Assembly: GCA_964035545.1 (NCBI GenBank)
Contig: OZ037768.1
Span: 18,335,700 to 18,399,699 of the forward strand
Direction: 5' to 3'
Origin: Bugula neritina
Taxonomy: Eukaryota > Animalia > Bryozoa
DNA: 64,000 bases
Shown: piece after piece, positions 15,748 to 39,640 of the stretch
Layout of the letters: each line of letters opens with the position of its first letter
How positions within the stretch are numbered: position 1 is the first letter of the stretch
Notes under the pieces: model-generated
Databases searched by the model: none
What the model saw: the letters and a program-made list of their open reading frames with translations, nothing else
What the model was told of the DNA's origin: nothing
Program-made: the position numbers and the translations under genes

Positions 15748-15819
15748 ATGAGTTTAAATCTGCTATTAAGACTCTCAGACGATGAGTTTGAGAAACTTCT
15801 ATCTGCAGCGGATGTTCAG
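15748..15819 (+). CDS. PH-actin fusion gene, coding exon 1 (MSLNLLLRLSDDEFEKLLSAADVQ)
   Basis: Acceptor ttgtag at 15701, ATG at 15748, CAG|gtatgt donor, phase 0 in frame with next exon. Confidence 0.65.
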
Positions 15820-18800
15820 GTATGTATAGTTAGACTGTGCTCTACTACCTTTGTGCTTATAACCTGTATATAATACATGTACATAAAGTTTAGAGCCAAT
15901 GACTACAGGCTATAGGTTATAGCTTTGACAAAAAATGTTAAAATTTGGTTGATAGATTTTCCTGAATTTTGAGTCTCTTTTGCTATAAAAATAACATGAT
16001 TTATCTTGAACTGAAAGCTTTACTAGCCTTCAAAATATTGAATGCTATATCTCATACCTAGTACTATTAGTTTTCAGTATGTATAATTTTTATTAAAACC
16101 ACACACTTAACCTTTGGCTGTACATTTCTTAACCTCTATTGTTTATTAACCAAGTTTTAACATGTTGACAAAATGCATAGAAGTTATGGTAGGCTACAGC
16201 TTACTAAAAATAAAAATATATATAGAAGTTGAAGGCTGCATGTTACATTACTACAGTTTGCAACCTTTTGAGAAGATAAAAAATGGTCACCATGGTAACT
16301 AAACGCAACCATCAAACTATTCTCAAGTACCTTTCAAATGTTTTCCACAAATGTATGCAAACGCATATCTGGAGCATTTTTTACTTTGGGTCTATAAACG
16401 GTAGTGCAGACCCCTGACTACTGGTTGATACATTCACACTGAGTATACAGTCAACACTTTAGTTCTCAGCTAATTCTCACTTCTAAGTTCTATTACTAAC
16501 TTACAGAATGATAAGATTGCATGTCCACAGTCTAAAGAAAGATGGGTGTTATAGGCTGGTTTATGCTGCATATATAATTCACTTCGCAACAGTGTTATCT
16601 CATATGCTAAGCTTTAAGGAAGTGGAGTTATTTCCTTCGTCCACTTCAGTGTTTCTCTAATTTAGTACAATATTATTTATAAGCTGACCTTTCTAACTGT
16701 TTACATTCAAACATGAGATACCCAACTGGGTTTATTCTTAGAGTTAGGATGAAATCTACACTTTAAAAAGCAATTGTCGCCTACACTTAAATAGTTTATA
16801 AGATGTGGTATAACTTCATAATCAGTGTTTAAAACAAGCAAACTTGCATAACTCATTCTGTATTGGAGTAATTCTGTAGATATGGTTGTTAAGCTGTGTA
16901 TTTAATTACAAATACCTACATGCTAAACATTCAATGTGTTATGATAATATATTCACACAAAGCTTTTGTAGATAGACTTGTTTGACAACTGAGATTCCAA
17001 CACAAAATAGTTGAGATCAAAACATTTGATATTGCACTACTTGTGTTACTTTCTTGTGTGGCTCACGTATCTGAAGTGTTGCAATCTTTCTTAGAGCAAC
17101 TGCAGCTGATAATACAGACTAGGTACCTCCCAGCTATCCATTAGGCAAAACAGTTATACTGTACTTCAGCAGTGTAGCTCAATAAAATATAAATTTTAAT
17201 TTACTGGTATAGACTGTAATGGTTGCAAACTACAAAGACATGCACTGTTAACAAAGGGTCTAATTAAACTGGGGTTTCTAACAAGGTACCACTAAACCAA
17301 AAATAAATTAAAAACTTAACTTAATTTGCTTCCCTGAAACAAAAGGTAGTAATTAGAAATATTGTTAAGGTGCTGCGAGGTTCACCACAATTGAGCTGTT
17401 CCTTTGGTTGCAGTAAAATGCTTTTTAGTACAAGTAATAATAGCTGTGTAAGAAATAAGAAATAAACTTGTTTTAGCAAATAAATTTAAACATGAGTCGG
17501 CTAGTAGACCAGCTACTAATCTATATATAATATCCTAAATAGCTAAGTCCTATAACCTACTGAGCTCCTTGCAGCTATTGATGCTAATGTTGACACTTTT
17601 CAATGTGAATCAGTTCGACAATGATAAAAATGATGTGCTTCCATTATAACTGGGTATTAAAATATTTTACAATGATTATTTTTCATTTAATTTTGCAGAA
17701 ATAAGTTATCTAAGTAGCATTTAAATTTCCAATACATTCTTGACTTTTTTAAACAAGTATCTTTTCAGGAACATCTTGATGGGTTTTCTAATTTTAAATC
17801 AAGTATTACAAGCTCTATAATGTATAGATCTACTTTCGAAAAGTCTTAAATTCTGTCATCCTGGCCATTCTTATCTCCATGAGGCAGCTACGACTAGTTT
17901 ACTTAAAATATTCACATCATGCCCTCCCCCCCCCCCCATCTGCTCAATAGTACGTATGTTTTCTACTAAATTTGCATTTGGCTGCAATATTATAGTCTGG
18001 GGGTTACATGTATTGATTAATGTAAGACTATGTATTAATTATGGTATTGTTTTCCTATCATAATTATCTCTTAGTTATATAACCAATGCCCAATTCTTAG
18101 TGTTATCAATGAATAATGGTTGACTGAACTCACACAATGCTATTGATTTTTGGGTGTAATTAGTTTAGTTTAGTGATTGACAATTCACTATTATATAATA
18201 TGAAACCATTTATTAATCATGTTTTCTTCTAATAAATCCTAATAAAAGAGCAATATATGATTAAGATTTAATATTAATACAGAAGTACATACCGAGGTCT
18301 TGTTGGCCACTTCTAAATTATATTAAAACAGACTTATAGATAAAAATCTTGCCTAACATTTATGACCTTAAAGTCCTTATTGTTGCTTAAAAATCTGGGG
18401 TTTTCTAATGAGGAGCAACTATAAATGTACAAGAGTGCTACGTAAATATCACAAAACTCAAGTAGAGCAAGTTCAGCCTAAATACTTTAACCTGCATCTC
18501 TAATGGTTTGAATTTCCCTAAAACCTTCCGATATAGTGTGATCTAAGCTAGTTCTGCTTAGCTTTGCTATTATAGCAAAAAGTTAGATTAAAGTTTTGTA
18601 TGATTTGAGCAGAGCTCATGCAAAAATTTTTTGCCTTGTTGTAATGCAAAGATTAAGTAAAAATTTCTTAGACTTCTATGATAAAGCAGCAATTTTCTGC
18701 ATGAATGTAATAAACTCACGATACTTCTTTTGCAAAAGACAAGACAACTCCTAAAATTATAAGCTATGTCCTGAAAATATCTAATATAGTTTTTATAGGT

Positions 18801-19377
18801 GACAATAATTTTATAATACAAATTTTATTCAAAAATAAACTAAATAGCACATAGTTATTAAGGAAATCCTTTTCATAACTTATATATTAAATAATGGCCA
18901 TAGATCAATGATAGTGCAGTTTGATTTTTAAAGCAATTTTGTGGACATGCATTAAACATTTTCAACAAGAATTCAATTATGATTGTTTGTATTTCATCAG
19001 CTGTGGTAGCATCACACAGTTGTACACTGCAGACAGCATTAATATACTGATTAGAAATCAATTATACTGATGCATGCTGTCTTTAGTCATGCATAATGAT
19101 TTATTATTATCAGATCTGTGAGACTGTGAGAAACAGACTCAATGAACAAAGTGATAGCCATATGGCTTTAACTCAACTCTGGTGTTACTCTAATAATCTT
19201 GTGTAGTAAAATATTGGATTGATTGCTTGATTCTAGAGAAAAAGCTCATGTGGGTTTATAGCTGCTATCTTTGTGAGAACCACCTCCTCGGAAAATTTGT
19301 TTAAAAGTGTGCTAAGGACGTGTTTTATATTGTGGAAAAGGAGCAATTATGACTATAACATTACAAATGACCTTTTT

Positions 19378-19443
19378 CTGGGATCCAAACCACTAACCTT
19401 GCGCTTACTAGGCCAGCAATCTAACCACTAAACTACAGCTGCC
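19378..19443 (-). mobile_element. tRNA-derived SINE head (or tRNA pseudogene), intronic
   Basis: Reverse complement GGCAGCTGTAGTTTAGTGGTTAG...GGTTTGGATCCCAG has A-box-like and degenerate B-box-like motifs at tRNA spacing. Confidence 0.5.
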
Positions 19444-19506
19444 ATTATCTAATTCTATATATTAATATAAATGAAACTTTGATAACAAATTATATTTCTA
19501 TTCTAG

Positions 19507-19701
19507 AGTGCTATAGACATTATATTTGAACTACAAGATGCCATGGTGAAAGAGCAAGAGAGATTTGATACCATCTCTACAGCTCTCTCTAACATACATG
19601 ATAGATCTTCACTGCAATTCGCAAGACTTTCAGAAGAGCTGGTAGATTCGCAGAATAAATTAGCTTTGTTGGTGTTGAGAAACAAGCATTGCTTCCAATT
19701 G
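19507..19701 (+). CDS. PH-actin fusion gene, exon 2 (helical/coiled-coil)
   Basis: ttctag|AGT...TTG|gtaagt; 65 codons SAIDIIFELQDAMVKEQERFD...HCFQL. Confidence 0.8.
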
Positions 19702-21357
19702 GTAAGTTTGCCTAAATCAGCTTCAAAATAGAAGCAGGTGCAGTAAGAAAGAAACCATGAGAAAAGCCTGCATTATAGATGAAAAATGTAGCATAACTTA
19801 ACCCATGCCCCAAACCAAAACTTGTTAAGGATATTAAAGAACTTAGGCTATTAAGATTTCTCTGCCATTGTACATAAATGTCAAGACCGCAGTTTTATAA
19901 TAGCAGATAGCAGATTTATTATGCCTATATAGTTCGTACTTTGGAGTTTACTGCGCAATGTATAGTGCTTAAAAATAGTAGTAATGTAATTTGTTGCTAA
20001 GGAGCTATAAGGAATGCTAGAATATGTTGTATGGACAGCCTACAATGTGACTGGTGAGTCATTGATAACTTATCTAAGCTGAACGGTTTAACGTTACATA
20101 GCCAGTGTGTCTGTCTGTGCATGTACGTGCTGCAGTATTTATATTATATATTATATCATGTAACATAGAACATGTTCTAATCACCCTTTGCAAGTAAAAG
20201 TTTACTCCCAAACAGCTAAAATAATGGCAAGCATATGCATGAGTATACTTTTTAGAGAATTCTAAGCGCAAAGAATGAAATGTTTGTAAAAAATGTGCAC
20301 TAAAGTGTTGATTTTTAACTAAAAATTTAAACTAATTTCTAAGTACCTAACTAAATAAATGTCTTTGATGCCTGTTGTAACTTGCAACTTATTTTTCACT
20401 GTAAAATTTGGCTTAGCATACAAACAAGCTTAATATATATACATATATATAAAACTTGATATATATACATATATATATAAAACAATGATATATATATTTA
20501 AAATATTTCAATAATTATTTATAACATATTTTTTGAGAAAGTGACTGATACTTGACACTTATTGATCTCGACCTTTATCAACCAATGACTATATTATGCA
20601 ATTAGCACAACTTCCCAGGTTTTACATGAATGAATCGTCTGATTATTATGTTATAATTTGAGAACAGATGTTCCATGTTTGGCTTGCATATTGCTTCAAA
20701 CATAAGCTGATGAAAATTGTTTATCAGCGAATGCAAACATTGGATCAATATTATTATAGCATGCTATTGTTTCAATATATCAAAAAATTTAAAATACTAA
20801 AATTTTTGTTACCATCTTTGGTGAAAACCAGGCATTTATTACAACAATTTAGTTTTAAAGAATGACTGAATACAATGCAATGGCAAGGCATCTGAAATTA
20901 TAATAATAAATGTTACACAAAAATAGCAGCTTAGCATACATATTATGACATTAATTTTTATATAATTAAAATCATAATAAAATAATTAATACTTTTTTAA
21001 TTTGCACAAAACAATAGCAGCTCTCTTTTGTCAATGGAAAGTAAATCAATCTAAATTCTAGAATGACACCATAAAAAGTGTATTTCAGTTGACAATGTTG
21101 CAGGTAAAGTCTTAAGTACATACTGCAATGATGAGTAACAACAATTATAGTGATTAGATTCTTTGCCTTTAAACATTTTACTTTTAAAGGCAAATAATTA
21201 AACTTATTTTCAGTATAGTATGGATTAGCAGTAGAAACGCTAAAGAATTTACAACATTCATTAGCTACCCACAGCATGTTATTATACATGTAGGTTTTAC
21301 TGAGTTGCAATTCTTATTTGTCATAACACTGACTTATATTTTATGAAATTTTTGTAG

Positions 21358-22309
21358 ACTAAAGAGCCCGAAGATGAGCATGATGTTGACGCTTCTTTGA
21401 ATTATAATTGCTGCCTGTCCAACAGGGACTCTAATAAACTGAAAGGTGCTGACAACTCCAATTCTACTGAGAGTAGTACTGAGAACTCCAGACATACCGA
21501 TCAATCAAAAGGTGCTGACAAAAACTTCAAAGAACAGCCGCCACACATTAACACCTTAGATTCTGTAAATATTCAATCAGACTCAGGCTGTAACTACAAC
21601 TCTGGTGGATGCCAGCAAATAAGTTCCCAATTCGATTCCCCAAGGCTGGAATCCACAGCTCTACTATCTGTATCCACACCAACACAGTCCACTTTTGATA
21701 AGAAGTCTAAGCGAGTTCTTACAGTTAAAACCACCAACTTGTCAGGGTGTAATGCAGACAGCCCTCATTTACTCACAAATTCACAGCCGAGAACAAATAG
21801 CAAATCAGAAGCATCAGATTTATCAAAAACTGTATCATCTGTAAAATCAAATATGTCACATGACAATGACAAATCAACAACGAACAAGTTTCAACCCCTA
21901 CCTACTTGTAATCCCTCTTCTACATCATACGTTTTAGGCACCGCAAACATTGTTTCTTCCATAAATACAAGTTTGGTCTACAATGCCAGCAGCACATTGT
22001 TCGGCAGCATTTCACCAGGTCTGCGTTCACCCAGAAGTGACATCAGTAATTTGTGCACACCAAGGTCTTTCCGGAGTTCGTCATCTCCTAGAAGTGACAT
22101 TAGCACTGCTACACCAAAATCACGTCAAAAGTTGTCTCCTCTCCCCGTGTCTTCTATTCTTGACCTTGACATGCCCGAGACTAATATAGATGAAGATGAG
22201 AGAGTGACTTTATGTGAGGAGCTCGTGTCTGATAAGATCTCATGTACCACAGACGAAAGCGGTTTCACGTCTGCTTCTTCTGAATCCGATATCACCCTCA
22301 CCAGTCCCG
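21358..22309 (+). CDS. PH-actin fusion gene, exon 3 (Ser/Thr-rich disordered region)
   Basis: tttgtag|ACT...CCCG|gtaagc; 952-nt open frame, phase 1. Confidence 0.85.
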
Positions 22310-23163
22310 GTAAGCTATTTTTATAACTTATTAAAATCAGTTAAATTTAGTTTATTATAAAGTTTCTAATGTTATTCTCTCTTTGCATGTGCTCTTTTTT
22401 ACTAATGTAGTATCGTGTTTTCATGAAATTGTAAAAAGAAAAAATGTATTGCAATGTTTAATAGCATTTATACTATATATTCTTGGGTAATGTTATAACT
22501 TATATATACTTGTTACTAAACTTATAAGTAAAAAAAATTAGGATTATATTTGTTTTAAAAATCTTAGCTCATAGTGCTAGATAAAAAGCTTCTGTTGGTG
22601 ATTTTCTTTATTATGTTAGACAACTCTCATTTCTTTATCATGCAAAGGTTCTTTATATTACTAGCAATTTCTATATACCTGAAGCCAAAGCAGTAAGCAA
22701 CATTTCTAAATAAAAGATTATGGTTATAAAAGTTACTTATTCAGCAGAAGTTGCTGGTAATACAGTTTTAAAGACATAGGAGTACTGAATTACAATGTTG
22801 TACAATACCATAGACTATAGAGTAAAGGTTTATAACACAATTTTTTTCCTTCTTCTGCCCGTTACTCCACCCGTTATTTTTTCAACAGGAGCTACAATTT
22901 ACAATTATTGTTATAAAGAATGTATCAAAACTAAATAACCACTTAAATATCAGGATAACAATGCCCTGAATTATCTCCCTCTCCCAACCAAATTTTATAG
23001 TAAGCCAAGGCTCCTGATAAACACATATACATAAACTATTTATTACTGTGGGCATGTAGTTTATTTATTGCGCACTATTGGTACATAGGCTGTTATAACA
23101 GTGTGGCTAAAATGATTATCATGGTACTAGATTGTAAATTATTTCAACACTATTGTTTTTTAG

Positions 23164-23237
23164 ACATTGTATACGATTACCATCTTGAAGATGAAGAGAA
23201 AGTAGAGGAAAGGATATCCTTAAGGGGCTGGGATCCA
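23164..23237 (+). CDS. PH-actin fusion gene, exon 4
   Basis: ttttag|AC ATT GTA...CCA|gtaggt; DIVYDYHLEDEEKVEERISLRGWDP. Confidence 0.8.
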
Positions 23238-23503
23238 GTAGGTTATCATAATAGATTCTATTTAAACATAATTTCAGGCTTTTTATAGGCCCATCTTCAA
23301 ATATACGTCTGTATAATGTTTCAATAATTAGATGGTAATATATTCTATTAATGTCGATTTTAAAAATGTGTTTCAATTGCAAATAATAGCTTCAATACTT
23401 ATTTCATTAGCTAGCTACAATTGAAAAAGGGTATTTTTAGCTGCATAAAAATATTTAGAAACTAAAATAAAAATATGTTAATACTACGTAATTTTGGTTT
23501 TAG

Positions 23504-23548
23504 TCAAAGCTGGTAGATGAACTGTACAAGGTGGAGCTGGCTACAGAG
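23504..23548 (+). CDS. PH-actin fusion gene, exon 5 (45 nt)
   Basis: ttttag|TCA...GAG|gtatgt; SKLVDELYKVELATE. Confidence 0.75.
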
Positions 23549-24606
23549 GTATGTGAACAGTTTTTGAATGGCCTTCAGTCTTATTGACTGATGAAACATA
23601 CGTATATGTTCATCAACACATTTATGGCTGCGGGATAACTTAATATGTCAGCAGTTGAGGTTTTTCAAGTTAAATTAATTTTTATTTAGCATTACTGCAT
23701 CCAAGGCTTAGAAAATTTTTTAAATAATAATAACAATCACAATATAGAGTATTTAGAGAAACATATAAGATAGTGAAACTATAATAGTTAACTATTTAAG
23801 CAACATTTACTTATTTTATTCAACTACAATGAGGTGTTTGGCAGTTATGTGTAGAAGATACAGTAGCTTCTGTTTTGAGTCAGTTCTTGTATTTAGCAAA
23901 ATGAACTAAGAGTGCTTCTGGGTCTGCAGGCTTATTCATGCTTATAGGTTAACTAGGCTTTTTCAAAGCATCAAAAATAGTAAAATTATGGTTTGAATGG
24001 TCCCAGGCAACAAAGAGAGAATAACTCTAAATTAATGACTAATTACAATTTCAGGAGGTATTAAATGAAAATTGGATATTCATAAATCCTTTAGGTATTT
24101 TTAAATAAGTATAATAACAACATATGCATGTGTTTTCTAATCATAATTATATTATTTGTTGAACTAGACTGTAGTGATATTCGTGCCATATGGGGGAGGG
24201 GGAGGAGAGGGGGAGAGGGGAGGCTTTTAGCACTTTCGGTTGTTGTCAACTCTCTTCATCATGAGCTCTAGATTGCTTCAAAAAGCTATGAATTAACACC
24301 TCAAGTAAAAGCAGTAGAAGTCAAATGCATTGCAGTTTTATTAACCAGTATAAGACTAGTTCAGTGTACACACTATTGCGATTATATAAGAATTACACAC
24401 CACGAAGGAATCTCCACAACATTTTTCTAACTCATAAAAGTATTTGATTTCAACAGGCTATTGTATAGCCTAGCTTCCTCATGCCATTAACATGATGCCT
24501 CCACCTGATCTCTAAAAATGTTCACAATATGATAATATAACTAAACAGTAAATAATCTGTTATACAGACTGTTGCTAAAAATTCAAATTGATAAACTTTT
24601 ATTTAG

Positions 24607-24744
24607 CCCTCAAATGATAGAGAAGTGATAAACATGGAGGGATATTTGGAGAGACTACCCATTGGAAAAAATAAGAATACGTTGCTGAGGACGTGGAAAC
24701 AAGCATACTGCAAGGCTATAGATGGCATACTCTACTTTTACAAT
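24607..24744 (+). CDS. PH-actin fusion gene, exon 6 (PH domain strands 1-3)
   Basis: atttag|CCC...AAT|gtaggt; MEGYLERLPIGKNKNTLLRTWKQAYCKAIDGILYFY fits the PH pattern EGYL..W+..Y....G.L.(F/Y)Y. Confidence 0.85.
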
Positions 24745-25517
24745 GTAGGTGGTACTGAGCTATAACACTATGCTTTTAAATTTAATATTTAATTCTAAAC
24801 CGTAGATATACTATGAAAAGTAAATGAGGCTTATGTTACATTTTAAATCTAAACAAAATTTTAATGTAATGTGGGCTATTTGAGTTGCCTTTAGAGTTAC
24901 TTTCTTTCTAAAACTGCAATACATGATTGTGAAACTGTGTAAATCATTGCTTTTTGCAAATTCATATTGAAAACCATGAGTTAAATATTTACTGCTGCTA
25001 AGCTTGACTCGTAGTGCTTAAGTGTTTTGTCACATAGCTTTTTACATATAATCAGAAAAAGTAATAAAATTGCACCAGTTTCATCAAAAGATATATTAAT
25101 AGATTAAAATCTTTTGTTTTTTGCTGTAATTAACTGTATATCTTGCAACTTTTTAATTTTTCAAGAGCAGTAAAACGAAGGCATCTAAACAATGAGTCAG
25201 TTTTCAAAATGAGAATGTAATTTAAACTTTATCAACTGCCAAAAAATAATAATTAAAGTTTTTTGCAGTTATCTTAACCAAGTTGTTCAAACTCATGAAT
25301 CTAATAAAAAACTATTTACTCTAAATTAGGTCAAAAACATTTTCATTGAATCTTTCAAGTGATTTCAAACAACTCCCAGTAGCAAAAAATCCTGCAAAGT
25401 TATCATCTTTCTAACATCAACTGGTAGTCCTATAATATTGTCAATGCTTTAAAATAGTTGACCAAATTTGATGAATTATATTAATTTTGACATGCATTGT
25501 ATTTTTATATTTCATAG

Positions 25518-25610
25518 ACAAAAGAATCTACAGAGCATTATTCATTCATGTCTCTTATGGGCGGAGAATTAGAAGAACTGTCTAATAGGATGATAGGTAT
25601 TGATGACATG
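25518..25610 (+). CDS. PH-actin fusion gene, exon 7 (PH domain middle)
   Basis: tcatag|ACA...ATG|gtaaga; TKESTEHYSFMSLMGGELEELSNRMIGIDDM. Confidence 0.8.
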
Positions 25611-26499
25611 GTAAGAGTTAGTGTGTTTTAAAATATTATTTCTTTAGGGTAAAACATATATAATGAAATTATTAAATTGAAGAATTTTAGAAAGAAAAAT
25701 TTTATTGAATTCTTCTGAAGCTTTTTTATCAGCTCAACAAACTAATAAGAAGTGAAATAGAAGTCGTTCTCTCATCATTGCTTGCAGAAAAACATTTCAA
25801 CAATATTTTGCTTTTACAAAATACTTCCAGTACAGAAATTTTATGTTAGTGTTGCAATTTCTAATTCTTTTTTGTTCTTTTAGAGTTTTATTTTACAATA
25901 TTAGGCCATTCTGTGTTGCTATGACTTATTGTTATATACTATATAGCTATAGGTTATAGATTTATACGATATTATTATATTTTTATGAACAGTACTTTTG
26001 TGATGTTTAAATTAAATCTACGTAGAAGCCATAATCAAATACAGATTACTTATCAAATTTCTCAGCATGTTACCCATTTAAGAATCTTTTTTATTCTTGC
26101 TAATAATGAAACTGAAAGTTGAATTAAATTTTTGAGTATCTAGTTATAATTAGATTTAAAAAAAATCTTATTCATATAAAAAATCAACTAATTTAATTTA
26201 AACTAAAGCCACCCTATGCCATTCATAAAATCTGTACCTGTAATTGCTTACAGTTCATAAAAGTATTTAGAAGTTATCCCCAGTTAGTACTATTGATAGT
26301 AGGAAGCTACATGCAGGTCTTCTAGTTATTTCAAGTTGTCTCGCCTTGTTCTTGTTATAATTGCTATAATCGCTGAACACAGCAGTAAGCATACACTAAG
26401 TGTGTGCACTTACTGCTGTGTTATATACAACTGTACAGAATTTACACTGTGTATATATGATTTCTAGTTTAGAAAACATAATATATTGCATCTATTATA

Positions 26500-27060
26500 A
26501 TACAGCAATATAGTAATGCAATGCAGTCATATTATATAGTAATACAGTAATATGATTGTCTAATGAAGTAATATAGTAATACAGTAATATAGTATTGTAA
26601 TACAGTAATATTATATAGTAAATAAGTAATATAATAATGTAATGCAGTAATATAGTAATGTAATACAGTAATATATTAATGTAATACAGTTAATATAGTA
26701 ATATAGTAATACAGTAATATAGTATTGTAATACAGTAATATTATATAGTAAATAAGTAATATAATAATGTAATGCAGTAATATAGTAATGTAATACAGTA
26801 TTATATTAATGTAATACAGTAATATAGTAATACAGTAATATAGTAATACAGTAATATTATATAGTAAATAAGTAATATAATAATGTAATGCAGTAATATA
26901 GTAATGTAATACAGTAATATAGTAATACAGTAATATAGTAATACAGTAATAAAGTAATACAGTAATATAGTAATACAGTAATATAGTAATACAGTAATAT
27001 AGTAATACAGTAATATAGTAATACAGTAATATAGTAATACAGTAATATAGTAATGTAATG
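26500..27060. repeat. AT-rich tandem repeat (TAATACAG/TAATATAG)n with ~130-bp higher-order duplication
   Basis: Direct reading; the block starting at 26571 recurs at 26701, and a pure 16-mer run lies at ~26960-27050. Confidence 0.92.
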
Positions 27061-28536
27061 ATAGTAGTAAAACTATTTGTTTTGGCAGCGTTGTTGATAA
27101 GTTATTATCAAATTTCCATGAGGTAAATATTTACGTCACTCCTCTAAACATGTATAGGGGTACAACGCTGTTCCAATTTGCCCAGTAAAAGCAGAGCATT
27201 GCGCAACATGTATTAATATGTTGGTCACATGTGAACCTTGAATCACTCCCCCTTATTTTTGCAAAGCGTTTGTTTTGAAACTAGATTAAACTTTTATAGA
27301 AGAACATTTTTTTAATCATCTTATAAAGTTTAGTGTTGACAGTTGCTGATTAATTGATTAGAACTGCCAGCAATACTTCTGATTCTATCAATTAGTATAG
27401 AACTTACTAGAATGTTTACATTTCTAATTATGTACAACTGAAAGTTCTCTCAAATCTAATTTAAGTTACACAGAAAATGTCTCATGTTATGTTTACACCC
27501 TGGAATTTGCACTCACTGTAGTTTGTCAACACGATTGTTTATAGCTTTGATTTACAACAATAATAACTAGGTTATAGTTTCCATATGAGGGGTCAGCTAT
27601 ACAATATATGTTACAAATTAATTCAATCAATCTTTACCTCATTAACCCAGCTGGCTTTAAAGTGTTACATTGAATTTTGTGCCCTTGCTATTTACTAACT
27701 ACTGCAGCTGTTTTCATTCTACAAAGAAAAAAATCAAACTGTGCAAGTTGTTGATGTAATATATATGTATTTAGAAAGAAGAGATTTTATTTTACAAGAT
27801 TAAATGATATTTTAAAGTTGTATACTTTCTGCCAATATGGTGGAGCAGATTACTCCAACTTCTGATGCATAAATGAGAGAAAATGATGTTTTCTGTTGCT
27901 GTGCAATGAATTTGGCTTGTTACCTTTCCATCTAGAACTGTATCAGATTAGGTGTTGTCTAAAGTTTAGAGTCTAGGGCCTAGGCTATAGTACTTCTTTT
28001 AGTTTGACATATTATTCTTTAATATAGTATTATATTGTTTCACAGTTTACTCATTTGAGACTAGCATTATTTAATAAACTTAGCCAGTAACCTCATCAGC
28101 CACAAAACAGAATAATTTTTGACCTTATTAACCTTACAAATTTTTAACCAAGTCCCCAAATTTGAAATAATTTCCACTTTTATAAAACAATATTTTACCT
28201 ATAAATAAGGACTTGACGTATAACCAAAGTTGCTCAACACTATCTGATGGCTCAGCTGCTACTCTCACAAGTTTTAACTAAATTAGACTAGGCATTATTG
28301 TTTCCGGCATGTTCTAAAGAGAGGTTGCAACTCTAGAATCTATCCACTAAAGTTCACTGACTCTTATAGTTGTAATGGTGGCCAGATGTTTGCAAGCTGT
28401 GTTTTGAGTTCAATCAGTTCAGCTGTATTCAAATATCTCTCCAAATGTTTTTTATTTTCTTTCTTGTTGAATATATCCTAAATGTGTTTTGGATACTCCG
28501 CCATTTTGAAAAACTATATAAACTTGTTTCCTGCAG

Positions 28537-28738
28537 AGAGGCCACTACTTGATGGTCCGGTGTGCTGAGGCTGACCACTCAAATTGGAAGAAGTCATTCC
28601 ACACTCAGATCAAATGTTCACCCCATACCAACTATGTTCACCCTTGTTTAGTGTGTGCTGACAACTCCCTGGTACCCAAAGTGGTCATTGTTGATATTGG
28701 AAGTACATCCATAAGAGCAGGAATTCTGGGAAATAAAC
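28537..28738 (+). CDS. PH-actin fusion gene, exon 8 (PH C-terminal helix + actin phosphate-1 motif)
   Basis: ctgcag|AGA...AAAC|gtaagt; HYLMVRCAEADHSNWKKSF (PH Trp) and VVIVDIGSTSIRAG (cf. actin DNGSGMCKAG) lie in the same exon. Confidence 0.9.
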
Positions 28739-28950
28739 GTAAGTGTGCCACACTCTTATAAAACTAAAAACATAGAAATGAACTCGGATATTTAAGATCT
28801 AAAAAAGTGTTATTTGTCACTAACAGCTGCATAGAACATTGGAAAAATTAAACAAGTATACTTATATTCAGGATGAATAACTCCTATATTATACATAATT
28901 ATGGTTTATATGTAAAACTCAGACAATTAACATTTTCATTGTGATTTTAG

Positions 28951-29096
28951 CCAGCTACCCTCAACTGTTCTTCCCGTCTGTTACATCCACCAGCAATGAG
29001 GGACAGCTAATAGTTGGCAGAGAAGCGTATTTGCCAGAGAACAGAGTAAATGGTATTCATAAACCAATAGGAACGTGCAAAGATAAGACTGAAACT
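28951..29096 (+). CDS. PH-actin fusion gene, exon 9 (actin subdomain 2)
   Basis: ttttag|CC...ACT|gtgagt; PQLFFPSV...IVGREA (cf. actin PRAVFPSI...YVGDEA). Confidence 0.88.
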
Positions 29097-29680
29097 GTGA
29101 GTGAACCATTTTCAACTGCGTACAATTTTTACCAAATAGAAGTTTAAAACAACTTCTTAACTTTAAGAAATTTTTGTCAAGTATTTTTTATAGATTTAAA
29201 CTTTCACAAATAATTTTTGTACGTGTTTGGTTCAGCATTTATTCTCGGTCTCAAAATAATGAATTATTAAAATATAAAGCTACAGCAAGCAATAAAAGTA
29301 TTGGAAGGCAGTTTTTTCCTACATCAGTGATTAATGTTCGACTATATTAACAAAATTGTGATTTTTTAACAGCTTGGAAATTATAAAGTGTAGAAAGTTT
29401 AGTTTCAAGACTGAAATTTGGCTCTGCTCATCTTGTTTAAGTGTTGAGCTGCATATGTTTCACCCTCTTTGCCCCTCTAGTATCTTGATATCATTTGTAT
29501 ATATAAGAAGTTATAGTTTAGCTTTACTAAATACTCATTACTTTATATTATACTCTTATACAACATCTTAGTCAGTAACAGCTATAGGAATTACAATTGC
29601 TTTATCCTAGAGTATAATTATGTTATTTTGTTCAATATAAGTTATGCTCTTCAATAATTAAAACCATGACTGTTTTTTAG

Positions 29681-29761
29681 TATTGCGTCAATGTGCAGGT
29701 CCTGCCCAAGTTGTTCCAGGAAATTTTCTCTCAACTGAAAATCAACGTCAAAGATTACGCG
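29681..29761 (+). CDS. PH-actin fusion gene, exon 10
   Basis: ttttag|TAT...GCG|gtatag; YCVNVQVLPKLFQEIFSQLKINVKDYA (cf. actin NWDDMEKIWHHTFYNELRV). Confidence 0.85.
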
Positions 29762-30735
29762 GTATAGTTTATTTTGAAACCTTATCTAATCTTTACACTC
29801 ATGTATGGTTGCTAGCAGTTATATGATGAAATATTATGCTATTTATAGCGCAGCTTTGATACCATTACAATCAGCAATAGGAAATATATATGTTTTTCCC
29901 ACAACAGAGTGTTGCTTAGTAGCAAGCTAGTTTTTGATAAACTCATTGATCACCTTGTGTAGTTTAGCAGTAGTTTCGAGGCAATAGGCACGTTTGGTGA
30001 TTCCTAGAATACAGAGGTAAATATGTATCCTCAGATGTGAAATTTACTATTCAAAGCTAATTCCCATTAGTTGTTCTATTGACATTTATGACTAGAAATT
30101 ATACAAGCAAACCAAATTAAAAAATAAATAATTCGGTCAGGAAAACATAATTAATTCCAACCATTAAACAAAGTTTCAAGAATTTACTTTACATATAGTT
30201 TTGTTTAATTCAAACAACACATGCATAATTTAAGCCACTTGTGACCAAAAAGCCTAAGAGTCTTGTGAGGTGATGCTGTGTGCATTGTTACTAAATGTAG
30301 GTTAGCAGGCTAGACCTAACATTATAAATTAGTTTAACTTTTTTTCAATTGACCTAAAATTCTAATTAAATTATGCCTTACTCTGTACCTTTAGCCACTC
30401 TACTTATTCAATGAGCCACCAGCTTCCTAGCAACTAACGAAGTATTAAGTATAATAGTTTAATTCCTTGTATTTATATTGTATGATGCTAAAACTGCAAG
30501 AAATATTTCCTATTTTAAAACAGCGGACTAGAAAAAAGTCTCACATATTTTAAACCATGGATAATTAAAACTGAAGTACTCAGTCTCCTTCAGCTTAAAT
30601 TATACAAGTTTCATTGCTTTAGTTTTTGTCAAAATATATTTATGACATAATAAATCATATTTTTTATATTTGATAGTTTTATATAGTACAGATAAGTACA
30701 TTAAATTACTGATATCGCAATATTTCAAACTGTAG

Positions 30736-30928
30736 ATACTTTTGTCAACGCCGCATCAATTCAGCTCTCGTCTGAAAGAGGAAATACTTAACATACTTAT
30801 AACTAAGAATGGTGCTGCTGGAGTCAGCATGATAAACCAGTCTCTACTGACTCCGTATATATACAATGCAGCATCTGGCATAGTTGTGGACATTGGGGAA
30901 CGCATTGAAGTTGCTGCTCTGACAGATG
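30736..30928 (+). CDS. PH-actin fusion gene, exon 11 (actin connect-1/phosphate-2 motifs)
   Basis: ctgtag|ATA...GATG|gtaaca; INQSLLTPY...SGIVVDIGERIEVAALTDG (cf. actin AIQAVLSLY...[20 protein letters not shown]). Confidence 0.9.
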
Positions 30929-31007
30929 GTAACATATATAGATATAACTATGATTTACCATATTAGAATTTTTTATAACTTTTCAAGAATCATAGTAATG
31001 ATGAGGT

Positions 31008-31225
31008 GGTGTCTAGTCAAAAGGACACAGATAATAATGGAACAGGTGGAAAAGTAGATAAAATGGCACATTTTCATATTATGGTTTGGGTTTGGGGTTT
31101 AAGGGTTTGGGTTTTGGTGTGCCATTTTTGCCTAAGTTTCTAGTTGTACTATTATTACCTGTGCCGTTATTTTCTGTGCCATTTTTATCGTGCCATTTTT
31201 ACCTGCGCGGTTTTTACCTAAAATC
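31008..31225. mobile_element. ~218-bp foldback/MULE-like MITE with G-rich core
   Basis: Inverted arms made of AAAATGGCAC(AGGT) / GTGCCATTTT sub-repeats; flanked by ATGATGAGGT (30998-31007) and ATGATGTGGT (31226-31235), a 9/10 target-site duplication. Confidence 0.6.
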
Positions 31226-31285
31226 ATGATGTGGTAATTCTTATAATACTCTGGAAGATGACAGTGACTGTGTTGCTACTCTTAG

Positions 31286-31422
31286 GCTACTTGGTTGAAG
31301 GCACTCTCAACAGACAGGGGTTTGGCGGAGCTCACATCACGGATACTCTGACCACTTATCTAGCCGAACACAAACTGCTGGCACCAGTGGAACAGCTCAT
31401 TGCCCGTTTAGTAAAAGAGAAG
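31286..31422 (+). CDS. PH-actin fusion gene, exon 12
   Basis: tcttag|GC...AAG|gtatga; FGGAHITDTL...IARLVKEK (cf. actin LAGRDLTDYL...IVRDIKEK). Confidence 0.9.
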
Positions 31423-32023
31423 GTATGATTGGTGAAGCTGTAACCCTATTGATTGTAATATTATAGGTGCTCATATTATTCCTGATTAGTTCTACAGGTG
31501 ATTATAATTGTTATGTCTTTTGATGTTACGCTAAGACCGTGTCTGAAATAAGGCACCTCAGAGGTACAAACTGACACTTGCGTTTTGGAAAGGGAAAAAT
31601 CTCCACTCCCATTGCTCACAGTTTTGAAAAAATAATTTAATAAATAGTTACTAAATAAATGGTGTCTGTGCCAGGCATTTGCTTTTATGATCACAACGTT
31701 TCCAAGCTTGCATTATGTGACCGGTTTTCTATTTGATGTCTGGAAACAGCAACCACAAATTCATCCAAGCATCCATTCACATAAAGCGAAGTAATGCAGT
31801 GCATATATTGTAATTTTAAGGACACTCAAGCAGTTAACATTTTTACTAGAAACTTCAAACTATCTAAATCTAACTATGCTTCTATTGCCAGATACTCATA
31901 TAAAGATAACATTGTCAACTTTAAAATTATTTTTATTTTTATATCAAGAAAATATAAATTTTGTTTTATTTGCCAACAGCAGGTTCATAATGCAATATAA
32001 AAACGTGGCTATTATATTTGTAG

Positions 32024-32142
32024 GCGTGCTTTATGTCTCAGGACTATGGTGATGACCTACTCAAATATATGTGTAATGAGAAGCAGTGTGAATTTAAAAT
32101 AGACTTACAGAACTTTGATCTTCCCCAAGAATTTCCTGCCAG
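32024..32142 (+). CDS. PH-actin fusion gene, exon 13
   Basis: ttgtag|GCG...GCCAG|gtttgt; ACFMSQDY (cf. actin LCYVALDF); phase 2. Confidence 0.85.
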
Positions 32143-32195
32143 GTTTGTTCTTTGTTGTTGACATCCACATTATGACACAACTTTAGAGATGCTAA

Positions 32196-32579
32196 AGGCC
32201 TGGCCACACACTCGAGAGAATCACATGAATATTAATCGTCTATTTGACACGAAAAAGCAATCGTAAAAGAAAATTTGAGAGAATTCAAACAAAATCATCT
32301 TCGTTGGGTGTACACAACGATGACGATGGACGAAAAACCACAATCGACAATGAGCACCATTTGATTGGTCAATAGAATTTTAGCAAAAGTAATTGTTTCA
32401 TTTCTACCACGTTTCTCTATTTGGCAATTTTTTACTGTTTGTATCTTGTGCAAGACTCATTCACAGACTATTTATTATGCGTTTCGTCCGACGAGTGTGT
32501 GGCTGGTCATAACGAGAGGATAACTCATGAAAATCGTCACACGATTTCGTATGATCCTCACGGGTGTGAGGCCAGGCCT
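32196..32579. mobile_element. 384-bp PIF/Harbinger (Tourist-like) MITE
   Basis: TAA|AGGCCTGGCCACACA...TGTGAGGCCAGGCCT|TAA: ~30-bp imperfect TIRs and a 3-bp TAA duplication. Confidence 0.8.
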
Positions 32580-33531
32580 TAACAGCTCTGTAGTCCAGTA
32601 GCCCTGCAATATAATCTGGTAACCTCATTCCCCCCCCCCTGCATATTGTGATAGGCTAACAAATTAAATTCCGTATCTGGTGTCCTCCAAGAGGACAGAA
32701 TTTGATCATAACTGCTTGTGCACTACACTGAAAAGTTTCAATTCGTGTTGCCGACTTGGTTTGAGACAAAGAGTTCAAGAAAGCTTATCTAGAAACATTC
32801 ATTTGTACTGTGATTACAATTTGATTATAAACAAAAATGATATGTTTATAACTAGTGTTACACTTATACTTAGCCTGTTTCTTTATATGAAAAAAGTTTT
32901 TATTAAGAAAATTTGAAGCCTCGAGCGAAAGAAGGAAAACAAATAATGTCTCCAGAACCAAATTCTAGATCATCAAATTGTTGTTATTAAATGTTCTGGG
33001 TGGTGATGACAGCATTTGAATAAATTGCAGACTGGAACTTCTTTATACTCATCACTCAATGTTATGAGTCACCAAATTTGATAATTTGATGACAGGAAAA
33101 GTTTAAGCTTGGCATGATTTAATAACAAGAAACAGATGTGTTGAAGTGTGGGTTTTCGACTCACATTATTTAAAAGTTTATAACATTCCACTTTATCAAA
33201 ATAATAATTCTTGTTATATTAGTTGATATACTGTAGTTCCGGTTAGCAAAATGATTGCTCCAGGCAGTTTTTTGTTAAGTCATCAGGGATTCGGAGATTG
33301 AGTTTCAGGAGGGAATTTAATTTACCGAAAACAATTTACTACTCATGTTCCAGTCTGTTATGTCTTGATCCCTTAATTGTCTTTATCTACATTAGCCAAT
33401 TATTTGCAATTACGGAAGGTTCGAGACTCCATTCGTTCTGTTATATATGATATCCTATATGTCCCCTTTCTCAGATTTCGTCCCAACTTTTTTAAACTCA
33501 AACAAACCTAATATTAACCTATTTTTCTTAG

Positions 33532-33778
33532 AAGAATTTCGATTGACACAGCAAGATTCAAAGCATCTGAGGGGTTGATTAAAACCGAACTGCATGGCAT
33601 GGACAGTCCAACACTGCCTAGGCTCATACATAACGTGGTCAATAACTGCCCAATCAACATTCGCCGAGAAATGTGGCAGAGTATATATCTAAGTGGAGGG
33701 ACAACTCTAACTCCCGGGTTTCCTGAACGTCTGCAGAAAGAGCTGGGAAAGATTGTGCCTTCTTCAATCAATGTTCAG
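33532..33778 (+). CDS. PH-actin fusion gene, exon 14 (actin adenosine motif)
   Basis: tcttag|A AGA...CAG|gtgaga; ARFKASEGL...CPINIRREMWQSIYLSGGTTLTPGFPERLQKEL (cf. actin LSGGTTMYPGIADRMQKEI). Confidence 0.92.
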
Positions 33779-36055
33779 GTGAGATTTGGTTGACCTCCAC
33801 ATTTAATGCAAACTACTTTAAGTGACCTAAACAAATATTTGCTCACTACTTTAGATGTTGCAATAATAAACCAACAGATCTGCAACTTTCATAAACCAAT
33901 TACTATGTTTGCTGTTGTTCAGAATGCTTTTGCTGTGTTTTATAACAGGTTGTTATTGCAAATTGGGCTGAACACAATGAATGTAACTGCAGTATAGTGT
34001 ATGGTTCATATTATAATATCCATATGTATTCTTTACAATTATACCAATGTTTTTGTTGACCGTGTATCCACACAAATCATATGTTTATCGACAATAATTA
34101 ACACCAATCAATAACCAGGTAATAACTAGGCCACCTTTGCATGATGCTGTTTACTATTTACAGCTTTTGTTTTCTAGCTTTCTAGTTTCTATGCTTTTCT
34201 AGGGCATATAAAATTTACAGGTTGACAAAATGAATAGAGTCATACTCATAGGTTACAGTGTATGTCAAGGTTTGGTCACGGAGTAGTAAGGTTTCTATAT
34301 GCATAGAATATGATTTCTAATTGATTAAAAACATTTTGGAGCTGCGTAAATCAAAACAATCAATTTGTAAGAATTTTTGAGGTATTGTACTGATTAACAT
34401 CGAATGTATTTTTATGTATGCATCATATAAAAACGTAGGAGTAATGCCTGAAACCTTCCCGTTTATATGTATGTAGTCAGCTGGCCTCATTGCCAACTTT
34501 AGAAATACCAACATACATTTTAATAGTCAGAGGAAAGCCAATAAAATGTCTAATTCCTTGTAATTAAAATTTAAACCCTACCCTATAGCATTGTCTAAAC
34601 TCTTAATAAATGTATTAAGATTTATATTGTGAAACAATGTTATGAAATATTTTGAAAACACTATGTTTGGCTTTTATTTACTAAATTTTTAGTTTTGGAA
34701 ATTAATTTAAAAGTATAAATTAAAAGCACCAGTGCAAAACCGTATTGCTAAACTGAATGATGCCATTGCATCATCCACTTATTATTAATTGTTTTCTAAG
34801 TTTATGAGAAATTACTTCCACTTGTTTACTAAGCTGTAGCTCATGAGCTTCAGTTCACAAGCCTTCTCCTTTATTGGCTATTGATAGAACTAACTGACTC
34901 CAGGTCGTAATCATTAGCTTTTGTGTTCACATTAGCATAAGGATGGAAATCACTTGCAATGAGTCATGAATTCACCTCACTCACCTTGAGCCTTAGTTAC
35001 TTTTAACATATTGGGTGCAGCAATGAACTAGCCTTACACAAATATTTTTAAAAGAAAGTTCACAGGCTATTTTAGCACTTGTTGCTACCAAATTGTTTAC
35101 ATTTTTACTATAGCTGCAACAATTTCTTTTACCGCTACTTTCCACCTACACATTTTTCATGAAGATTTAATTATTTGTAATTAAATCAATGCAATGTTAG
35201 AGGGGTTAGAATTTGTATGAGAATTATTGCAAAAAATTTTATTGGTTGTAACCTGCATAGCGTGAAGCAAAAAGTCGCAATCTCAGCTTACAGCTTCCAT
35301 TAAGGATAAACCATGGGTGGTAAATGGTTTTGTTTACTTTTATTGAACCATTTCACTGCTCAGAACTAATTTAGCTCAAATGAGTTCTTATATTACATTC
35401 AGAGCAAATCAAGTAAAACTTCCATGTAATCCTGGAGTTGTTTGATGCTTTACATTAATTGGATATAATATATTTGGAATCATCAGCCCATGACTATATT
35501 CGAGCTCTGCAGTGTGCAATGTAAGCAGAGAATATAATTAGCCAAATCATTATAATATAGTCTAGAAGGTTATTCGTTTACATCGTAATTTATTGCAATT
35601 ATCTGTAAGTTATGAGCCATTCAATCACTTTCACATTATGTAAAACGAACATTTATTGTACTTAATGCGATGATCATGATTTTATTGAAAACCATGGAAC
35701 TTAGTAGGTTTCCAGTTACAATAGTTGTGTGGAATAATTGGAAGTTATCACCTTATAATGCATGTAAACTTACATATAATGATATTTTAATGGTGAAAAC
35801 AGTATATCTTTATGAAAATAACTTGTTCACACATTTAATAACTCATGCAATTATTCAGAAATCATACATAGATGCACAATATTCTTAATAGCATGTGGTC
35901 TTTTAAACACCCCAAACCCAAAGTGCTTTAAAGTTAAGAGTGCAAGTGTAACAAATCTTGTTTGTGATAGAATAATACGCTGTGCTTGATACACAGTATA
36001 TAGATAGGTAAAATAGATTAGTCAATTACTGAATGATAGTTTTTCGTGATTTACT

Positions 36056-36395
36056 ATATACAGTGTGTACGTATAGTGTATATGTGCAGTGTATACTTGC
36101 AGTGTGCATGTATACTGTGTGCATATGCACATTGTGTATATGTACATTGTGTAGGTACAGTGTATATGTGCAGTGTATATGTGCAGTGTGTACTTGTAGT
36201 GTGCATGTATACTGTGTGCATATGCACATTGTGTACATGTACAGTGTGTACGTAAAATGTGTACGTACAGTGTATATCTACAGTGTGTACTAGCAGTGTG
36301 CATGTAAACTGTGTGCATATGCACATTGTGTACATGTACAGTGTAAGACGTGTACGTACAATGTATACGTACAGTGTGTATGTACAGTGTGTACT
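36056..36395. repeat. Purine-pyrimidine-alternating minisatellite, ~97-bp period, three copies of GTGTGCATGTAWACTGTGTGCATATGCACATTGTGTA
   Basis: Direct reading; it is the source of the seven overlapping C/Y/V/T/H-rich pseudo-ORFs at 36022-36544. Confidence 0.9.
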
Positions 36396-37421
36396 ATGCA
36401 CTCACACCCGTTCAAATACTCAACTTAAATGGCTTTTCATCTCAAACGCCACACAATGATTTTAGGAAAATGACTCAACAGACTTTGACTTATCTTTTGT
36501 GTTGTTGTTTAATCAGTATATTTGTAAAAAAATGGGTACCCTGATAAGAATTGGCCTTTGTAGTTGAGTTTGTAAGTCATATAATGTGTTTCACTAATTA
36601 GGCCTATGGTCGGTATGTCAGGTATTTCATATTATAATCACGTACAACATTTGTATGAATGCATCTTAGATACGAGTAGCTTGTGTATATTTTGTTCTCA
36701 ATGAAAAGGCAGCGTCGGAAGAGCTGTTCCGCTGATAGGATTGTGTTTGCAGGGTATAGAGTGTCGACTTGCAGTGTCACAGTACACCTTGTAGTAGCAG
36801 ACACCTAGCTTTCGTCTAGCTACTCGTAGACTATGTTTTACATATCTGTGCATGTTTTGTCTTCTTAGTGCTGATAGTGGTCTATTTTCAATGCATTATC
36901 TCAGTAATGGCTTTCTATCTATACTTTTTTATACTTTGATGTCCAAACCAACATCCTATAGTTCCATTTTGAAGGAAACAATAGGAAATGATAAGAATTA
37001 GTTTTGGTGTAATTATTGTAGAGATAAAATAAACACATTCTGTCAGAAAGTCAAATCTGTCCACTTACTGATATCAGCTGACTCACTACGACATGTTTCT
37101 CTCACGAAAAAGCAAAATACCAATGAAGCAACTCATTTGCATCTTTGTTTATGATTTCAGTGTCTTTTCCCCACAATAATTTAAAACTATTCTACTTGCT
37201 GACGTGTTCGCATTGCCAGCAGCATAAACTTGTAGATCAGTCATTATAAGGGTATTTATTATTTCTATGTATGCCAAATAGTTTGTATATACTTTCACGG
37301 GTTAAAATATAGCGTCATTCTGTGCGAAAAGACATTCAACATATAAACTCTTGTGTCTTAACTTATAGAGTGAGATAGAATTTTGGTAAAAGAAACATAT
37401 AGTTTGTGAACTTGATTGTAG

Positions 37422-37565
37422 GTTCATGCAAGCCCACATCGCTACCACGCCGCTTATATTGGAGCATGTATACTTGCCAAATTACCACACTTCCACCAGT
37501 CCTGCATTTCCAGAGAAGAGTGGTTAACCAATGGCACAGCTTCTCTCAGTAAATGGAAAACATGA
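37422..37565 (+). CDS. PH-actin fusion gene, last exon (actin C-terminus)
   Basis: ttgtag|GTT...ACA TGA; VHASPHRYHAAYIGACILAKLPHFHQSCISREEW (cf. actin [31 protein letters not shown]). Confidence 0.9.
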   Translation, partial: VHASPHRYHAAYIGACILAKLPHFHQSCISREEWLTNGTASLSKWKT

Positions 37566-39541: not shown

Positions 39542-39640
39542 CAGCTCTGAACTTCCTGCACTTTCATGACCAACTCCAGAATCTTTGGCTTCCTTTTCTT
39601 TCTGACTGGGAAGTGTAGCAGTGTCTTCAAACTCAGACGC
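39542..39640 (-). CDS. PDZRN3/4-like exon (KDSGVG motif)
   Basis: ttacag|GCG...CTG|gtaggt; 33 codons. Confidence 0.85.

Follow-up and report, generated by a model that had tools for sequence, protein, structure and literature searches.

Does a single animal gene really join a pleckstrin homology (PH) domain to a complete actin fold and, if so, is the product a peculiarity of one genome or a member of a wider family? The question is raised by a locus of the bryozoan Bugula neritina, on the plus strand at positions 15748-37565 of a 64,000-nucleotide stretch of contig OZ037768.1 (the whole of this stretch is called the window below). A first-pass annotation made from the letters of the window had proposed here a gene of 15 exons coding for about 945 residues, in which a helical N-terminus, a Ser-rich linker and a PH domain precede a divergent actin domain, and had regarded it as an uncharacterised, membrane- or partner-targeted scaffold. 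The locus is an expressed gene. Its product, 945 residues long, belongs to a protein family that is conserved among bilaterians. From the N-terminus onward, the protein consists of a helix motif and a helical hairpin, a Ser-rich disordered linker, a helix of the form WDP...LLxxLY, the PH domain, about 20 residues of linker and a complete actin fold.

The gene model was built from splice signals, reading phase, tblastn searches of the window with orthologues and RNA contigs. Its 15 exons (Table 1) sum to 2838 nt, equal to 945 codons plus the stop at 37563-37565, with no internal stop codon. All introns are of the GT-AG type with compatible phases, exon 1 being the one that needs no acceptor. 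The region is AT-rich (G+C about 32%), and its plus strand bears a run of short open stretches with coding character. This independent rebuild arrives at the same exon count, length and end coordinates as the first-pass annotation. It also bears out the claim that one exon (exon 8) is shared by both domains: within it lie the Trp of the PH C-terminal helix (28585-28587), which all 46 family members have, and, from 28693 on, the phosphate-1 loop of the actin fold (VDIGSTSIRAG). At the other end of the gene, a second in-frame ATG is found at 15655, 31 codons upstream of the chosen start and in the same open stretch (15655-15747). The N-termini of orthologues favour 15748 over 15655 as the probable start codon.

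Transcript evidence links the domains directly. Four sequencing runs, each from a different study and all bearing the same organism label, supplied contigs that were placed on positions 23100-29099 of the window. None of the four is recorded as RNA, and the sequence shares are small (0.09-0.13); the runs nevertheless behave as spliced RNA, since the contigs lack introns and only exons are covered. The joints run from the end of the Ser-rich exon to 23163/4, then from 23237 to 23504, 23548 to 24607, 24744 to 25518, 25610 to 28537 and 28738 to 28951. The joint that leads into the shared exon, 25610 to 28537, is present in all four runs, and exon 8 occurs in spliced contigs of each of them. Contig ends that reach past 29096, again in four runs, equal the 30 nt with which exon 10 opens at 29681. 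A contig of run X1 (1707 nt) starts before exon 4 and stops where exon 8 ends, and another of run X2 (981 nt) leads from exon 7 across exons 8 and 9 and goes on for a further 531 nt, which matches the 530 nt of exons 10-13 taken together. Read-backed junctions therefore span the Ser-rich exon to exon 10, while the joints of exons 1-2, 2-3 and the remainder from exon 10 to exon 15 were placed by their splice signals and phase, by the lengths of the contigs and by comparison with colinear orthologues. Two other splice choices, an exon 10 acceptor at 29699 and a phase-1 acceptor inside exon 6, were ruled out by the RNA contigs. That PH and actin parts belong to one gene, as had been claimed, is thus supported by spliced contigs spanning the Ser-rich, PH and actin exons.

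The same contigs indicate that the coding sequence is under constraint. Their exons differ from the window by 3-5%, and 14 of the 17 listed differences are synonymous and 3 non-synonymous. Two genomic contigs (L001 and L002, from the Logan assemblies of SRR4020080 and SRR4020081) match window positions 27780-28892 over 1.1 kb with 89% identity in DNA and 97% in the exon-8 protein. The 14:3 excess of synonymous changes and the higher conservation of protein than of DNA both indicate purifying selection. The divergence of SRR4020080 and SRR4020081, together with that of the transcribed exons, suggests that a sister lineage or species complex is involved. A homologue search with exon 8 itself returned a single 80-residue open reading frame (ORF), in the sister-lineage genomic contigs; the length window of that search left out full-length relatives.

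Full-length relatives are, however, abundant. An exhaustive HMMER search with a 91-residue open stretch around exon 14, the actin exon with the strongest conservation, gave 155 representatives at E <=1e-10. The best-scoring matches are mostly about 500-3000 residues long, score 58-126 bits and place the matched stretch about 45 residues before the C-terminus. When ten orthologues were scanned with Pfam, Actin (PF00022; 152-211 bits, model positions 3-407) directly followed PH (PF00169) in 10/10, the PH match exceeding its gathering score in 8/10 with a maximum of 44.1 bits. Judged by source names, more than 80 PH-actin orthologues are predicted in public protein sets and represent at least nine phyla: Brachiopoda (Lingula), Annelida (Owenia, Dimorphilus and Capitella), Mollusca (more than 25 species), Nemertea (Lineus and Tubulanus), Arthropoda (Limulus, a tick, spiders, decapods, a mayfly and a dragonfly), Nematoda (Strongyloides and its relatives, and Aphelenchoides), Priapulida, Echinodermata and Hemichordata. 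The closest homologues of the window protein are lophotrochozoan. Among the matches listed, in lists that are not exhaustive, there was no vertebrate, dipteran (Drosophila) or Caenorhabditis member. Clusters of the ESM Atlas, which combine Actin and PH in arthropods and include an actin-domain cluster in nematodes, agree with this distribution. The members are labelled "uncharacterized", "PH domain-containing protein" or with automatic names such as "actin" and "POTE...-like".

An alignment of 46 members (profile A1, 894 positions) makes it possible to place the window gene within this family along its entire length. All 15 exons match the profile in order, from position 10 to position 892, and the protein keeps 17 of the 18 invariant and 48 of the 56 near-invariant columns. 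The family layout comprises an N-terminal helix motif, a helical hairpin, the WDP helix and PH, from which a short linker leads to an actin fold marked by DIGER and VHASPxRYHAAYIG, and the window protein fits it throughout. The N-terminal motif S-x-x-E-F-x-x-L-L and the helical exon that follows are common to nemertean, brachiopod and echinoderm proteins. Because these N-terminal parts are shared and every exon is colinear with the profile, the whole 945-residue architecture, and not the PH-actin junction alone, is ancestral.

Table 1. Exons of the PH-actin gene and neighbouring features; positions are those of the window, bit scores and E values without further label refer to family profile A1
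Feature	Positions	Strand	Content	Evidence and remarks
Exon 1	15748..15819	+	Start codon and N-terminal helix motif LSDDEFEKLL; donor GTATGT; ends in phase 0	Aligned by eye to N-termini of Lineus, Lingula, Tubulanus and Acanthaster orthologues; profile weak, E 0.55
Exon 2	19507..19701	+	Helical / coiled-coil segment	30.6 bits at profile positions 33-93; tblastn with Lineus P0008 residues 45-114, E 4e-10
Exon 3	21358..22309	+	Ser-rich linker of 317 codons, expected to be disordered; open frame; ends in phase 1	Last 30 nt joined to 23163/4 in RNA contigs of runs X1 and X4
Exon 4	23164..23237	+	Conserved motif with WDP at its end	tblastn matches to four orthologues; keeps W238 and P240, both near-invariant in the family
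Exon 5	23504..23548	+	Micro-exon of 45 nt, 15 codons, extending the WDP helix (LVDELY)	Found solely through RNA joints; keeps near-invariant Y248
Exon 6	24607..24744	+	PH strands beta1-beta3, including the beta1-beta2 basic loop	53.1 bits; tblastn E down to 9e-12
Exon 7	25518..25610	+	Middle PH strands	19.6 bits
Exon 8	28537..28738	+	Last PH strand, C-terminal Trp helix, linker of about 20 residues, actin phosphate-1 loop	64.1 bits
Exon 9	28951..29096	+	Actin subdomain 2 region	27.2 bits
Exon 10	29681..29761	+	Short actin-fold exon	14.6 bits; placed by local alignment to five orthologues
Exon 11	30736..30928	+	Q137 equivalent and phosphate-2 loop (VVDIGERIEV)	73.1 bits; Pfam Actin 18.1 bits; keeps family columns G526, G532 and R534
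Exon 12	31286..31422	+	Actin subdomain 4 region	31.0 bits; phases fit
Exon 13	32024..32142	+	Actin subdomain 4 region	21.5 bits; phases fit
Exon 14	33532..33778	+	Adenosine-binding motif (YLSGGTTLTPGF) and subdomain 3	122 bits; Pfam Actin 56.5 bits, E 2e-15 (33533-33778); about 52 bits against PDB actins
Exon 15	37422..37565	+	Actin C-terminal segment and stop	76.2 bits; Pfam Actin 32.6 bits (37422-37562)
Upstream neighbour	1100-1861	-	Open frame of 253 residues with coding character	Separate gene
Convergent neighbour	38235-41427	-	Terminal ORF of 272 residues (38235-39053); PDZ-like exon (41056-41427)	Ends 670 bp past the PH-actin stop
Tandem repeat in the 2.9-kb intron before exon 8	26498-27070		AT-rich; units of 8, 21 and 42 nt	Depth of RNA contigs up to 242 (run X13)
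Tandem repeat in the last intron	36055-36400		TG/CA-rich; units of 13, 15 and 97 nt	Makes long spurious ORFs on both strands

The PH-actin architecture is thus predicted in orthologues of at least nine phyla. The first-pass annotation's description of the family as uncharacterised agrees with the sources, in which no member has a functional name, and with the open-access literature searched, in which no paper on a PH-actin protein was found. Its suggestion of an undescribed system does not hold for anything peculiar to this genome, as more than 80 predicted orthologues in nine phyla are already public. We rate the find as an actin-related protein with a distinct, conserved architecture whose sequences were already available as unnamed predictions, and not as a peculiarity of the window.

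What might such a protein do? In the actin part, the landmarks stand in order, as claimed at the outset: the phosphate-1 loop comes first, the counterpart of Q137 second, then a phosphate-2 loop that is altered to DIGER, and after it the adenosine motif LSGGTT and the C-terminal segment VHASPHRYHAAYIG. Against Pfam Actin, whose gathering score is 27 bits, two window exons lie above that score and exon 11 lies below it (Table 1). The fold as a whole was modelled on the Lineus orthologue P0008 with alignment A1, which stands in for the window protein in all structural statements made here. In this model, the actin fold matches actin in Foldseek with a template modelling (TM) score of 0.93. In VIA-align, actin ranks first (Z 44.2, root-mean-square deviation 1.5 A over 344 residues, 28% identity), followed by a flagellar actin-like protein, Arp3 (38.0), Arp4 (about 35), Arp5, Arp6, Arp11 (about 33.5) and Arp8 (30.8). 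In the sequence search of the PDB, each of the 60 highest-scoring entries is a conventional actin, with a score of 150 bits for conventional actin. By the structure ranking of the model and these PDB matches, the predicted domain is closest to conventional actin and would belong to none of the solved classes of actin-related proteins (Arps).

Conventional actin and the PH-actin family have the four-subdomain fold in common, and with it the C-terminal segment, the adenosine motif LSGG(T/V)T, the phosphate-1 loop and a counterpart of Q137, but the differences are substantial. The conventional actins of eukaryotes are almost alike in sequence and have about 375 residues and no extra domains, whereas the window protein has 945, of which 560, including the PH domain, precede the actin fold. 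The phosphate-2 loop of actin reads DSGDG and is followed by His161, whereas the PH-actin family has DIGER; identity between the two is about 24-28%. The PH-actin gene has multiple introns, and the sequence of its subdomain-2 loop is unrelated to that of actin. An earlier idea that subdomain 2 is shortened and lacks a D-loop was dropped, as the alignment to actin differs by only about 2 residues in length.

The nucleotide site shows a mixed pattern that is shared by the family. The phosphate-1 loop (D-x-G-S-x-S-I-R-A-G) and the adenosine motif (L-S-G-G-V/T-T-x-x-P-G-F) are conserved family-wide, and the Q137 equivalent in 45 of 46 members. The phosphate-2 loop, in contrast, reads D-I-G-E-R-x-D/E-I; by alignment to actin, it has Arg at the position of actin G158 in 42 of 46 members and Ile or Val at that of H161. 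The window copy follows this pattern: DIGSTSIRAG and LSGGTT are present, and in its phosphate-2 loop the D and G are kept, while Arg takes the place of G158 and Val that of H161. In actin, Q137 and H161 position the hydrolytic water. As the phosphate-1, Q137 and adenosine motifs are kept but H161 and G158 are changed, the domain may bind nucleotide with impaired hydrolysis. The unrelated subdomain-2 loop, in turn, suggests that it does not polymerise in the conventional way.

Upstream of the actin fold, PH was assigned by way of the family profile and the orthologues, because single PH exons are too short for Pfam; scanned one by one (31-67 residues), the window PH exons gave no Pfam PH match. 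An AlphaFold2 model of the orthologous segment, taken as the WDP helix plus PH, has a predicted local distance difference test (pLDDT) of 86 and folds into seven strands and a helix. It matches known PH folds with a Foldseek E of 5e-7 and TM scores of 0.64-0.83 to the targets, and profile matches reach E 3e-9. The nearest PH domains are those of the phosphoinositide-binding proteins ARNO, PLEKHA7, TAPP1, ArhGAP9 and GRP1. In the window, all three PH exons match the family profile (Table 1) and keep G269, P275, W287, G297, D333, G336 and W352. The PH fold that had been read into positions 24607-28600 is thus corroborated from both sides, by the orthologue model and by the profile.

The remaining parts of the protein are helical or disordered. 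The Lineus model, with a mean pLDDT of 84, places helices at residues 5-119, disorder at 120-223, PH at 266-358 and the actin fold at 383-759. The N-terminal helices and the WDP helix (241-247) are conserved and confidently modelled (pLDDT 88-97), the region that corresponds to exon 2 being helical with pLDDT above 90, whereas the counterpart of exon 3 falls below 50. In the PH-only model, the WDP helix reaches only 75-86 as against 88-97 at full length, which is no more than a hint that it may touch the actin fold. An ESMFold2 homodimer of Lineus residues 1-122 scored 0.58, whereas the highest of 3 controls scored 0.01. Among solved structures, 21/30 homodimers and 0/23 single chains reached the mark used for calling a dimer. 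Contacts agreed to at least 83% between runs, the partner pLDDT was at least 85, and the exon 2 region lies within the predicted interface. The N-terminus is hence predicted to homodimerise, and we take the prediction as support for a dimer, not as proof.

From the predicted dimerisation, the disordered tether and the pattern of nucleotide motifs together, the explanation that we consider best is that of a conserved-family PH-actin gene whose product is a dimeric adaptor, with two actin-like heads sited by the PH domain and the WDP helix; its probability is roughly 50%. In such an adaptor, the actin-fold head would still bind adenine nucleotide, given that the phosphate-1 loop, Q137 equivalent and adenosine motif are kept, and the remodelled phosphate-2 loop would make it a probably slow or non-hydrolysing, non-polymerising mimic of actin. 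Dimerisation of the N-terminal helical module would provide two such heads on long flexible tethers, and the PH domain and WDP helix would place them at a membrane or on a partner. There, they would mediate contact with actin filaments or actin-binding proteins, an adaptor role of the kind that Arps fill in the complexes to which they belong. A scaffold role for the protein, as originally proposed, is likewise putative.

Several observations weigh against this explanation, some of which concern the PH domain. Canonical phosphoinositide-binding PH domains of the Akt and GRP1 type carry a basic K-Xn-(K/R)-X-R signature in beta1-beta2. The family consensus is strongly basic there (KKK...WKRRYF), resembling 3-phosphoinositide binders, and contains the signature; the window copy and its paralogue (described below) lack it. 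In the window, the beta2 motif (24670-24710) reads WKQAYC, with Ala replaced by Thr in transcribed strains, and the paralogue has WKRIYC. The non-basic residue stands at what we take to be the essential Arg of Akt and GRP1. While the PH domain as modelled on the orthologue shares the fold of seven strands and a C-terminal Trp helix with the phosphoinositide-binding domains of cytohesin/ARNO/GRP1, TAPP1, PLEKHA7, ARHGAP25 and myosin X, both bryozoan copies thus differ from them at the key position. Lipid targeting is doubtful in this lineage because the key beta2 arginine is replaced, and targeting by a protein partner or in some non-canonical way seems more likely from the sequence. The claim of membrane targeting made in the first-pass annotation is accordingly supported by the basic family consensus and not by the window copy or the paralogue, with their Ala, Thr or Ile.

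The other points on that side concern the head and the N-terminus. Arg at G158 together with the loss of H161 could abolish nucleotide binding itself, beyond hydrolysis, and the family-invariant D671 is Asn in the window copy (33640-33660). That the head does not polymerise is something we infer from divergence only. As for the dimer, the Lineus isoform that was modelled carries an isoform-specific insert that adds to the interface, and the calibration is weak on eukaryotes, with 7/16 animal cases at the mark and only 1/7 of the proteins without an older solved relative.

The alternatives to the dimeric adaptor differ mainly in what the head is attached to. The protein could be an Arp-like subunit of a stable multiprotein complex, in the manner of Arp4, Arp8 and Arp11, that would not itself act on filaments or membranes, with PH as a protein-interaction module and the N-terminal helices as the site at which the complex docks. 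We regard this as unlikely. Most solved divergent actin folds in the structure ranking are indeed subunits of complexes (Arp4, Arp5, Arp6, Arp8, Arp7/9 and Arp11), the basic motif of the PH domain is dispensable in the window lineage, and the N-terminal and WDP helices are both conserved and confidently modelled. Yet the beta1-beta2 consensus of the family is strongly basic and the nearest PH relatives bind phosphoinositides, and the head is nearer to actin than to any complex-bound Arp. That nearness to actin speaks for another idea, in which the head is a tethered actin subunit that copolymerises with actin filaments or adds to their ends, anchored through PH and a dimeric N-terminus. Among solved structures, the head most resembles conventional actin, and its subdomain-2 loop has nearly the length of the actin loop. 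The identity to actin of only about 25-28%, to be set against an actin domain in filactin that is described as highly homologous to conventional actin (PMC2441452), a D-loop sequence and phosphate-2 loop that are not actin-like, and the attachment of PH about 20 residues before the first actin strand nevertheless make such a subunit unlikely.

Two further explanations would deny the protein a class or even a gene of its own. Several Arps have insertions or extensions (PMC2441452), and the protein might on this ground be an orthologue of a defined class (Arp1-Arp11) with a lineage-specific N-terminal addition. This is highly unlikely, since the best PDB matches are conventional actins without exception, every solved Arp ranks below actin in structure with 17-24% identity, and the PH-actin architecture is conserved in nine phyla. 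The failure of any single PH exon to reach Pfam PH might be held to suggest an artefact, either two neighbouring genes misjoined or a PH gene that has taken up an actin retrocopy in decay. We count this possibility as refuted: both domains are coded in one exon, RNA contigs span the Ser-rich, PH and actin exons, the actin part consists of eight exons without a stop codon, strain differences are 14 synonymous to 3 non-synonymous, and the paralogue shares the architecture, as do orthologues from nine phyla. This conservation across orthologues upholds the claim of the first-pass annotation that the fusion is no product of gene joining.

If the dimeric adaptor is taken a step further, the family could be an undescribed bilaterian actin-related class in which a pre-formed dimer of actin-like heads, recruited by PH, seeds or caps filaments at membranes without Arp2/3, formins or tandem-WH2 nucleators. 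We consider this improbable. To our knowledge, no Arp carries a PH domain. Arp1-Arp11 and the orphan Arps (classes after PMC2441452) are, like the PH-actin head, divergent actin folds that keep nucleotide-binding motifs, and they are usually non-filament subunits or mimics of filament ends, a type of mechanism like that proposed for the PH-actin family; the solved ones differ from the head in ranking at Z 30-38, all below actin, and in being absent from the best 60 sequence matches. The Dictyostelium actinome lists Arp1-Arp11, orphan Arps and filactin and nothing with a PH domain (PMC2441452). Dictyostelium filactin and primate POTE-actin likewise carry a C-terminal actin fold in a long multidomain protein. 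Their actin parts, however, are near-identical to conventional actin, their taxonomic range is narrow and their N-terminal domains are unlike those of the PH-actin family, being of filamin type in filactin and ankyrin repeats in POTE. The Mya arenaria orthologue bears the RefSeq name "POTE ankyrin domain family member J-like", which is automatic and no sign of kinship.

Arps are a small and intensively studied set, and each defined class anchors a major machine, such as Arp2/3, dynactin or the chromatin remodellers. The PH-actin proteins would constitute a further conserved class with an architecture of its own, made up of an N-terminus predicted to dimerise, PH and an actin fold, that is spread over at least nine animal phyla and is under purifying selection. 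As no member from the usual model animals turned up in the searches, the family seems to have been overlooked. If the proposed adaptor is real, it would represent a new way to couple an actin-like module to membranes or partners. Orthologues are present in tractable species, including sea stars, molluscs, annelids and Strongyloides.

The Bugula genome (216 Mb) holds a second, full-length and colinear copy of the gene on another contig (G000:C5:7905258-7916371, minus strand; loci L004, L005 and L006). Colinearity reaches from the helical exon of the N-terminus to the C-terminal end of the actin part, and this paralogue is more compact than the window gene. In the exon that joins PH to actin, the two copies are 63% identical, as against about 40% between the window and other phyla, which suggests a lineage-specific duplication.

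In the window, the gene is flanked by an upstream neighbour and a convergent neighbour (Table 1). Both lie on the opposite strand, so that no same-strand gene could have been merged into the PH-actin gene. Two introns harbour tandem repeats. The one before exon 8 draws many unrelated RNA contigs and is therefore probably a dispersed element that is transcribed elsewhere; the other lies in the last intron, between exons 14 and 15.

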